A DNA stretch of 54,249 nucleotides, filler included, from Bipalium vagum (lineage: Eukaryota), in NCBI GenBank assembly GCA_037834085.1. It is 3 parts of 3 records of this genome, joined end to end, with 100 filler letters (N's around TTAATTAATTAA, not from the genome) between each part and the next. Parts side by side here need not be neighbours in the genome. Positions count along the whole stretch, not along the records: positions 16,133 to 34,229 come from JBBMKC010040746.1; 2 more parts are not named here. The stretch is one strand, 5' to 3'. The notes below the pieces were generated by a model. That model was not told the DNA's origin and did not search any database. It saw only the letters and a program-made list of their open reading frames with translations. Numbering within the stretch: position 1 is the first letter of the stretch; every line of letters begins with the position of its first letter. Shown piece by piece: positions 23,901 to 26,900 of the stretch. A program made the position numbers and the translations under genes.

Positions 23901-26900
23901 ATTCGTACGAAGATGTTCAAAACTGGTGTCCAATAGGATTCATTCTAAAAAAAATTTTATCGCCGCGGAATATCCATATTACCAAATTTATGAGAGAAAG
24001 TCATTTTAGTAAGGGGAATCCTTTCATTGATTGAAATAAATATTGAATTTTGTTAAAAAAAGTCTAAAAGCAATGCACCCTCGTAACATTAATTTTGTAT
24101 TGAATATTCCATGGAGTTCTAAATTTTACTTTTATTATTATTATTATGATTATTATATTTGTCAGACTGGTGATGGTGTTAACGATGCTCCGGCTTTGAA
24201 AAAGGCTGAAATAGGAATTGCTATGGGAAGTGGTACCGCTGTGGCAAAAAGCGCTTCTGAGATGGTTTTGGCTGATGATAACTTCAGTTCGATCGTTGCG
24301 GCTGTCGAAGAAGGTCGAGCAATTTACAACAATATGAAACAATTTATTCGATATTTGATATCGTCCAATGTTGGTGAAGGTAATTAATACAATCAATCTA
24401 TGATCCACAGTTATATCTGACTGTTACATCGTTATAGTCGTAAGTATTTTCCTAACTGCTGCTTTGGGAATGCCAGAAGCCTTGATTCCGGTTCAATTAC
24501 TCTGGGTCAATTTAGTGACAGATGGGTTACCGGCCACTGCATTGGGTTTCAATCCGCCTGATCTGGATATCATGGCCAAGCCGCCTCGATCTACGAAAGA
24601 ACCTCTGATCACGGGATGGTTATTTTTCCGATATTTGGCCGTAGGTACGTATGTAGGTGCAGCTACAGTTGGTGCTGCAGCTTGGTGGTTTACAATCTAT
24701 CCCAAAGGTCCTCAACTAAATTACTATCAACTGGTAAGTTTTTCCTTGTAATGGTCTCTACACAACGAATCGTTGTCCACAAAGCAATAATCGTTAAACA
24801 ATATTTATCATTGAGTGTATGATATGTAAAAATTGTAATGTTGCCGATTCCAGACCCATCACATGCAATGTTTAGCCGAAACGGAGAGCTTCAACGGTAT
24901 AGACTGTAAAATATTTTCCAATCCTAAGCCAATGACTATGGCTTTATCAGTATTAGTATTGATTGAGATGCTTAATGCAATGAACAGGTAACTAGTTCTA
25001 TCTGTCACGGGGAACACGAATCTATCACTGCATGATTTTGCCATTATTGAAGAACTTCGTCGGGGGGGGCGTAAGACAGGGGGAGGCTTTTGTGCTTACC
25101 GGGTTTAATAATTGTGCTGCACTCTTCAGAGCCATTATAGAATATGTGCAAAATATAATGAAAAACGATGCGGGGTTCCAATTGGAGCCTGACTCTACCA
25201 TTTAGTAAAAATTGATAAATGATATTTTGTAATATTTAGCCCACACAAAAGTTGACAGAAATAGTTGTTATCAAAGAATAAAAAAAGATCTTTCTTGGTT
25301 GAAACAGTTTGTAAAGAAACATTCAATAGTTTCGTCTTTAGGTCTCTTCTAACCACCTACCTGTTCACTTTTCATGAAAGTCTGTCCTAAACATGTTGAA
25401 ATGATTTATTGCCCAAGGAAAGTTTTGCTGATCTTATACTTGACAAGCATTGAAGTGTTTCGTGACTGTGGCAATTAAAAGACCTCAAATAATAACATCC
25501 AAGAATATTCAATTTAAACAAATTAAATTGAAAATCATTATTTAACTTTTAATATTGATTTTTACATTTATTTTTAAAATAAATCGATATAAATAAAAAA
25601 AAATAATTAAATTAAATTTTTTAACTGATTTTTAATTTTTAAATTGATTATTTTATTAAAAGTCAATAATAAAGAAATTGATAATAATACAATAATAATT
25701 AAATAGATTTTATTTTACATCCATCGAAATATTGATAAAACCGTTCAGGAATTTGGAATGGTAATTTTAGCACGATGGCAAGTAAGGATACCGGGAGATG
25801 ATCCAGTGAAGGGTTTTTCTGTCAACATTTTTCATAGACCTCATCCTTTTATCACTATTACATCTTCAAGCTTAAACGTTGTTGATTTTTATAACTAAAG
25901 ATTCCAATTTATATTTTATAATGGCTCAAGATATTTTTTAATCGATCTAGACACATCAGGCTCAATGTCTTGCTCAAGAGTCAAGATTTGAGGGAGTCGA
26001 CTGTTCTATTTTTGGTCATCCTAAACCGATGACAATGGCCCTTAGCGTCCTTGTTTCAATAGAAATGTTAAACGCAATGAACAGGTGAGATATTGCTGGA
26101 CCGATTATAAGCACTACGAAACGCATTTCTGGTGCCACAGTGTCTAGCAGGAATATCTTTTTTAATATTATTAAACCTTCCAACAAAGGGGCTCCTGGAA
26201 TAAAATAATTTTCAGTAAACTGAGGGAAACGCGTTCTGCTCTTCTTTTTTGCACTAAAGAGAAGACTTACTTATCGATTTAAGAAAAAATCATTGGGGAA
26301 AATGTCTTATTTTAGGAGCCCTTTTGTTCATATTAACTAATGAGGCTCTTTGTTTTTGATAACTTTTTAAAGATGGCAAATTCCACGAGTCCCTTTGAAA
26401 TAAAAAAAATGAAAGAAGTTGTTCTTTTTCTTAGGAGAATCTCTTTCTTAAAGATCGTCAAGAATTATTTAAACTATTATTTCCTGCTGAATGCTGCTTA
26501 TCAGGTTGATCTCCATCAACTGGAGTCCAGCAATATTTCATTAAAATAAATAAATGAATTAATAAATCGTAAAAGATGCCTCATTTGTTATTTGGTATGC
26601 CGTTATTGTTGCATTTTAGAGTGGGAGAATTAATTTAATGTTGGATTTTTCTCAAAAAAATAATATTCCCCCTTTTGTAAATGTTCTTTTCACTAAATAT
26701 TCGTTTATTATTTTTTACTTTTTCGAAAATTATTATTAAAAATCCCTGTTTACTTTTTCTTTTTTAAAGTAACTCAGTGTAATAAAATAGTGTTGTGCCA
26801 TTTTATCATGCTTGCTATGCTCGTTAATTGATTAATATTATTGATTATTATTATTATTATTATTGGTTATTGATTATTATTATTGATTATTATTATTATT

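Follow-up and report, generated by a model that had tools for sequence, protein, structure and literature searches.

Two tandem, putatively mutually exclusive SERCA exons in a flatworm are predicted to yield pumps that differ in the luminal M7–M8 loop

Introduction

A SERCA gene of the flatworm Bipalium vagum carries, side by side, two exons that encode the same segment of the Ca2+ pump. This arrangement raises the question of whether each mRNA takes exactly one of them, and in which part the resulting pumps would differ. PMC3527596 and PMC6987452 ascribe the diversity of invertebrate SERCA to gene duplication and C-terminal splicing. The segment at issue here is internal and comprises the luminal loop between M7 and M8 together with M8. 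In SERCA2a, loss of the C875–C887 bridge abolishes transport, and the E877L/D878L/E883L replacement changes the luminal Ca2+ dependence (PMC11826342); in SERCA2b, the luminal tail comes near the M7–M8 loop (bioRxiv 10.1101/2020.03.28.012849). An exchange of this loop, if kept in flatworms and molluscs, would amount to a natural experiment on a region of the pump whose function is just beginning to be understood and may include sensing luminal Ca2+, mediating redox control via the two Cys and serving as a docking site for the tail of SERCA2b; comparing two natural loops is a direct test of loop function. The pump is discussed as a drug target, and schistosomes, tapeworms and monogeneans would each have two forms of it.

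Results

The SERCA gene in the window

The window, i.e. the whole stretch of 54,249 nucleotides of B. vagum DNA that was analyzed, includes a piece (16133–34229) that holds a gene for SERCA, a P-type IIA Ca2+-ATPase, on the + strand, with long, AT-rich introns. The gene occupies at least 18065–30123 and was identified by motifs in open reading frames, tblastn and Pfam. The reading frames that start at 21086 and 24043 contain the DKTGT phosphorylation motif and the hinge motif of P-type ATPases. Fragments of bird, Fasciola and Schistosoma SERCA match successive exons between about 18065 and 30027 (tblastn), and single exons match the Pfam families E1-E2_ATPase, Hydrolase (HAD-type) and Cation_ATPase_C. 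Exons were mapped from 18065; those preceding the pair lie on the + strand at about 18065–18205, 18339–18590, 20915–21316, 22217–22440, 22530–22840, 22950–23282, 24166–24379 and 24438–24733, and those following it at 27623–27749 and 29911–30027, with boundaries checked base by base from 24379 onward and approximate before that point.

The constitutive exon upstream of the pair (24438–24733) encodes the end of M5 through M7, ends with ..GPQLNYYQL in phase 0 and shares 81–89% identity with its counterpart in eight related loci. It is followed by a 120-nt intron (24734–24853; gtaagt...ccag), exon A (24854–24987), a 963-nt intron (24988–25950), exon B (25951–26084), a 1,538-nt intron (26085–27622) and the constitutive downstream exon (27623–27749), which encodes M9 and supplies the third base of a split codon (AG+T, Ser), after which the frame continues LSENQSL... 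In Pfam, the two flanking exons match positions 1–76 and 105–145 of the Cation_ATPase_C profile, and the gap between 76 and 105 is the part filled by exon A or B. The next exon (29911–30027) encodes M10, reads ..LIARKFTD and ends at a 5' splice site.

At the 3' end of the gene, read-through past 30027 (..ARKFTD) to 30123 would add 32 residues with a hydrophobic stretch before a stop, resembling the long SERCA2b-like tails of molluscs. A candidate exon for a short tail, with a good pyrimidine tract, lies at 33338–33376 (VPRFNSDSEKDR, then a stop) and is similar to the ..TDVP.. ends of other flatworm products. Judging by these two candidate ends, classic C-terminal alternative splicing is probably also present in this gene. 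The introns on both sides of exon B carry copies of dispersed repeats, where contig depth rises 10- to 20-fold and contigs frequently break (25540–25653 and 27364–27591; run X1); the first of these intervals is the depth spike of a repeated element in the AT-rich A–B intron. Local inverted repeats are located at 26182–26211/26299–26328 and 27267–27294/27448–27475, and downstream of the gene a simple AT-rich repeat extends over 500 nt (31633–32132) at 6% G+C.

Structure and divergence of the exon pair

Exons A and B, each 134 nt long, lie between the same two constitutive SERCA exons, are preceded by AG (..ttccag and ..atctag), followed by GT (gtaact and gtgaga), start in phase 0 and have open frames; the 5' splice site of exon A is weak and that of exon B is consensus-like. 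Exon A (signature THHMQC.AE) encodes the luminal M7–M8 loop segment with both Cys residues and M8 with the site-I Glu, and aligns with rabbit SERCA1a 871–914 and SERCA2 870–913 (E ~1e-11), SERCA1 and SERCA2 being its nearest relatives of solved structure. Following the SERCA1a alignment, both copies retain the counterparts of C876, C888 and E908, namely Cys6, Cys18 and Glu38 by exon position, and a Leu/Ser difference between them falls at the site of T906. No third exon copy was found, and permissive tblastn of the related loci returned two copies per locus.

The two exons are identical at 85 of 134 nucleotides (63%) and 32 of 44 amino acids, and dS between them is saturated. The differences are unevenly placed: in the luminal half (codons 1–23), 11 of the 23 residues differ, and in the M8 half (codons 24–44), 13 of the 21 codons differ synonymously and a single one by replacement, the Leu/Ser site. 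This pattern of codon change shows purifying selection on both copies, and the many synonymous differences in the M8 half argue against recent gene conversion.

The reading frame constrains how the exons can be combined. When both are included, B is read out of frame and a stop is encountered after 26 codons; when neither is included, the next exon is read for 14 codons before a stop. The original prediction had described two 134-nt exons with equal phases, intact splice sites and open frames, only one of which could be used without breaking the frame, and the base-by-base reconstruction agrees with it on each of these points. Its description of differing luminal halves, of M8 halves kept nearly identical in protein by purifying selection, and of both Cys and the site-I Glu retained with Leu versus Ser at the rabbit T906 site was likewise correct. 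It also spoke of a swap of the M8 helix, and here it went too far, because A and B encode nearly identical M8 sequences and the helix is not really exchanged.

A 2,969-nt contig covers 24400–26828, i.e. both exons and the intron between them, without a single difference from the window; it comes from a DNA-like run that may be the source of the assembly. This was the only run with the stretch that a search of public runs returned, and no RNA run was among the hits.

The exon pair in flatworms and molluscs

The 44 residues of exon A were searched against 1.84 billion representative proteins; many of the matches were fragments of genomic ORFs, and one was a gene model of Protopolystoma xenopodis that held an A-like and a B-like copy. 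At the DNA level, the order upstream exon, A-type exon, B-type exon, downstream exon was seen in eight other loci: those of the monogeneans Protopolystoma (L002) and Cichlidogyrus casuarinus (L008), the cestode Hymenolepis weldensis (L004), the trematode Trichobilharzia regenti (L006) and the gastropod Plakobranchus ocellatus (L007), and loci from a Logan run (L001) and two ENA assemblies (L003, L005). With the window included, all 18 exons of the nine loci measure 134 nt and are bounded by AG and GT. In a gene model of the cuttlefish Acanthosepion, a complete B comes after an A that is cut short. Cichlidogyrus has the exons most similar to those of the window (91% amino acid identity for A, 93% for B), and exon B of the window shares 93% of its amino acids with a cDNA product of Schistosoma japonicum.

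Between species, dN is 0.03–0.32 within each exon type, with dS saturated or >1.6. Among flatworms only, the values within a type are 0.03–0.14, as against 0.18–0.29 between A and B of one genome; orthologous exons are thus more similar to each other than are A and B of the same genome. Exon position 9 is Glu in 9 of 9 A exons and Gln in 9 of 9 B exons, whose position 10 is Asp or Glu. The M8 half groups by species rather than by exon type, as is to be expected of a helix that packs against the remainder of one and the same pump. Two of the checks proposed with the original prediction, a tBLASTn search of related genomes and dN/dS, thus found both exons conserved as an A-then-B pair and evolving at low dN, and its judgment that the duplication was unlikely to be an assembly artefact holds, given 63% DNA identity, one spanning contig and the pair in other genomes. 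Going by the genomic sequences compared, the pair is common to flatworms and molluscs and not a peculiarity of this genome, and we have high confidence that it is real and old.

A second SERCA paralogue of Schistosoma margrebowiei (L089) has a single copy of the exon (3436–3569) between the same neighbors, and permissive tblastn found no second copy in its flanking introns. The pair is thus present in only one of the two schistosome SERCA paralogues.

In maximum-likelihood trees, the A and B types are set apart from the insect, tick, priapulid, rotifer and vertebrate sequences. The B exons of flatworms and molluscs fall on one side of a branch supported at 99/95 with 35 rows and at 70/78 with 28 rows, a clustering that was not matched in any of 500 shuffles of the labels. 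As the trees are built on 44 columns only and support for the cross-phylum grouping of B is uneven, orthology of the B exons across the phyla is likely rather than proven.

Splice sites and the basis of exclusivity

The two exon types differ consistently in their 5' splice sites. G at +5 is found in 9 of 9 B exons, mostly as gtgagt, and in none of the 9 A exons, an asymmetry kept from gastropod to flatworm. This suggests that B is the default and that A needs activation, which fits the presence of B in flatworm cDNA and gene models.

The A–B intron is 963 nt long here and 50–89 nt in four other flatworm loci, which makes steric exclusion unlikely as a general rule; between species, the length of this intron ranges from 50 to 1,433 nt. 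All A and B splice sites are of the GT-AG class. No convincing conserved competing intronic RNA pairings were found within 24600–27750, where the inverted repeats are AT-rich and of low complexity or form hairpins within a single intron. The frame rule combined with decay of the wrong products is the only enforcing mechanism that can be read from the DNA.

Spliced products

Transcripts and predicted products of relatives contain either exon. B is present in the S. japonicum cDNA product AAW25510, in gene models of Trichobilharzia, Fasciola gigantica, Dibothriocephalus, Schistocephalus, Cichlidogyrus and Elysia, and in several metatranscriptome products and contigs. A is present in a cestode-like Tara Oceans metatranscriptome product (P0209), in JGI metatranscriptome contigs including the flatworm-like L012 and L024, and in the gastropod gene models of Biomphalaria, Candidula and Bradybaena; much of this product evidence consists of gene predictions, which prove little. 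A scan of JGI data gave 80 intron-less SERCA mRNA contigs, among them the A-type L012 and L024 and the B-type L082, all three flatworm-like. Many of the 80 are of the AEPRMF (A) and VQDERF (B) kinds, and none contains both exons. Across the cDNA and metatranscriptome products of relatives, A or B is joined to its normal neighbors, and the two never occur together in full.

Transcripts with A and with B from one species were not found among the flanks of about 130 spliced products and the 80 metatranscriptome contigs; the best A/B product pairs are 78–92% identical in their flanks and thus come from different species. For B. vagum itself, mutual exclusivity is predicted from the frame rule and by analogy with its relatives.

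Three deuterostome-like products of a marine metatranscriptome (P0308, P0311 and P0313; SHFMQC) have flanks that are 94–100% identical and a 44-residue segment that is about 80% identical. They could be recent paralogues or alleles whose loop evolves fast, or they could reflect a set of alternative exons that arose independently in another lineage.

The pair is mishandled in public annotation (L002, L004 and gene models P0001, P0215 and P0335). The Protopolystoma model joins A, B and several spurious exons, B is fused to a shortened A in the models of the cuttlefish and of Plakobranchus, and the H. weldensis annotation splits the gene into three models at the exon pair. Several public gene models are thus wrong at the SERCA locus because the predictor met two exon copies.

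Discussion

The reading that we regard as very likely is that A and B descend from an old tandem duplication of one SERCA exon and have been kept as a mutually exclusive pair, giving two pumps with different luminal loops. Each mRNA would take one exon, A or B, between the same flanking exons, and the two resulting pumps would be identical except for about a dozen residues of the luminal M7–M8 loop, in and beside the Cys–Cys bridge. Exclusivity would come from the reading frame, with mRNA decay removing the wrong products, and from competition between splice sites, in which the strong 5' splice site would make B the default and A would require activation. The core of the original prediction, i.e. 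tandem homologous exons of equal length, of which exactly one would have to be used, giving two SERCA forms that differ luminally, is supported by comparative genomics and by the transcripts of relatives.

What the exchange could mean for the pump is indicated by where the differences lie. The conserved ones fall between the two Cys of the M7–M8 loop and directly behind the second: the acidic residue at position 9 in A (Glu) moves to position 10 in B, and position 14 also differs in this species. SERCA2 numbering is obtained by adding 869 to the exon position, so that positions 9 and 14 correspond to D878 and E883, both of which were replaced in the SERCA2a triple mutant with changed luminal-Ca2+ dependence. 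By analogy with this mammalian mutagenesis, the two loops may give the pump different responses to conditions in the store lumen, and two settings of luminal regulation are the likeliest functional reading.

The original prediction had offered luminal regulation or Ca2+ handling as what might distinguish the two pumps. Of these, a difference in luminal regulation is favored. The proposed effect of the Leu/Ser difference near Glu908 on the Ca2+ site was rejected as a functional difference: in the eight other loci, A and B share the residue at this site in seven, the gastropod locus has Thr and Val, and Leu/Ser is found only in this species. A difference in Ca2+ site chemistry between the A and B forms is not supported by these alignments.

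Three other explanations would leave the exon pair with less meaning. The duplication could be an artefact of assembly or of haplotypes, a concern raised by the single run that holds the stretch and may itself be the assembly source. Copies that differ at more than a third of their nucleotides, a contig that spans both without differences and, decisively, the same arrangement in eight independently assembled genomes refute this explanation, and its probability is negligible. Alternatively, only one exon, most likely B, might be used in this organism, the other being a conserved-looking relic or included too rarely to have a role. Such a situation would agree with the 5' splice site of A, weak in every species, and with the recovery of B in all flatworm gene models and in the sole flatworm cDNA. 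An unused exon, however, would not keep a length of exactly 134 nt, an open frame and its two splice sites across nine loci, from flatworms to a gastropod, in which synonymous sites are saturated; moreover, the dN of A in flatworms (0.03–0.13) is as low as that of B, and A is found spliced to its normal neighbors in the cestode-like product and in the flatworm-like contigs L012 and L024. We consider the use of only one exon improbable.

It could also be that both exons are used but that the choice is unregulated noise, the two proteins being equivalent and the loss of either copy mildly harmful. The net charge of both loops is similar in this species and no regulatory RNA structure was found in 24600–27750, as this explanation would have it. 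Against it stand the type-specific residues fixed across phyla, Glu9 in every A exon versus Gln9 with an acidic residue at 10 in every B exon, and the conserved asymmetry in splice-site strength, with +5 G absent from all nine A exons and present in all nine B exons. Both the fixed residues and the splice-site asymmetry indicate that selection has long maintained two distinct forms whose use is controlled, and noise has, in our view, as small a chance of being the explanation as the use of one exon. We thus retain the mutually exclusive pair as the preferred reading.

A broader proposal can be made only tentatively. Lophotrochozoan SERCA, at least in flatworms and molluscs, might possess a splice switch that predates the split of the phyla and replaces the acidic, disulfide-bridged stretch of the M7–M8 loop, with the two forms setting different responses to luminal Ca2+ or redox state by tissue or life stage. 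The switch may be coordinated with the C-terminal tail, and parasitic flatworms might present two pharmacologically distinct pump surfaces; as a whole, this proposal is possible but rather doubtful.

The suggestion in the original prediction that an internal SERCA switch might be undescribed is in keeping with the literature searched: no description was found among papers on SERCA, including schistosome and mollusc SERCA, in combination with mutually exclusive, alternative or tandem duplicated exons. In PMC10620052, SERCA and exon-exclusivity terms are both present, with no connection between them. The switch may already be present among the isoforms predicted automatically for public genomes.

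One SERCA gene giving isoforms with different regulation is a familiar situation, known from the C-terminal splicing of vertebrate SERCA2a/2b and of the genes of Artemia, C. elegans and Pinctada. In SERCA2b, it is the tail that acts luminally and nears the M7–M8 loop, whereas here the loop itself would be exchanged by internal exons and no tail is added. A tandem exon pair in the helminth gene coq-2 is reportedly also common to flatworms, molluscs and annelids. Like the SERCA pair, the mutually exclusive exons of coq-2 (PMC7434440) and of the muscle myosin heavy chain clusters (PMC3912159) are adjacent and homologous, agree in length and phase and have splice sites of their own; one exon is used per transcript in these systems, as is predicted for the SERCA pair. 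Both systems differ from the SERCA pair in the gene and in the region of the protein concerned; the SERCA pair has an A–B intron of 50 to 1,433 nt. Among P-type Ca2+ pumps, internal splicing that alters regulation or targeting is mentioned for sites A and C of PMCA (PMC6987452). The PMCA sites, however, are cytosolic cassettes that are inserted or skipped, whereas the SERCA pair would exchange one luminal loop for another, like for like.
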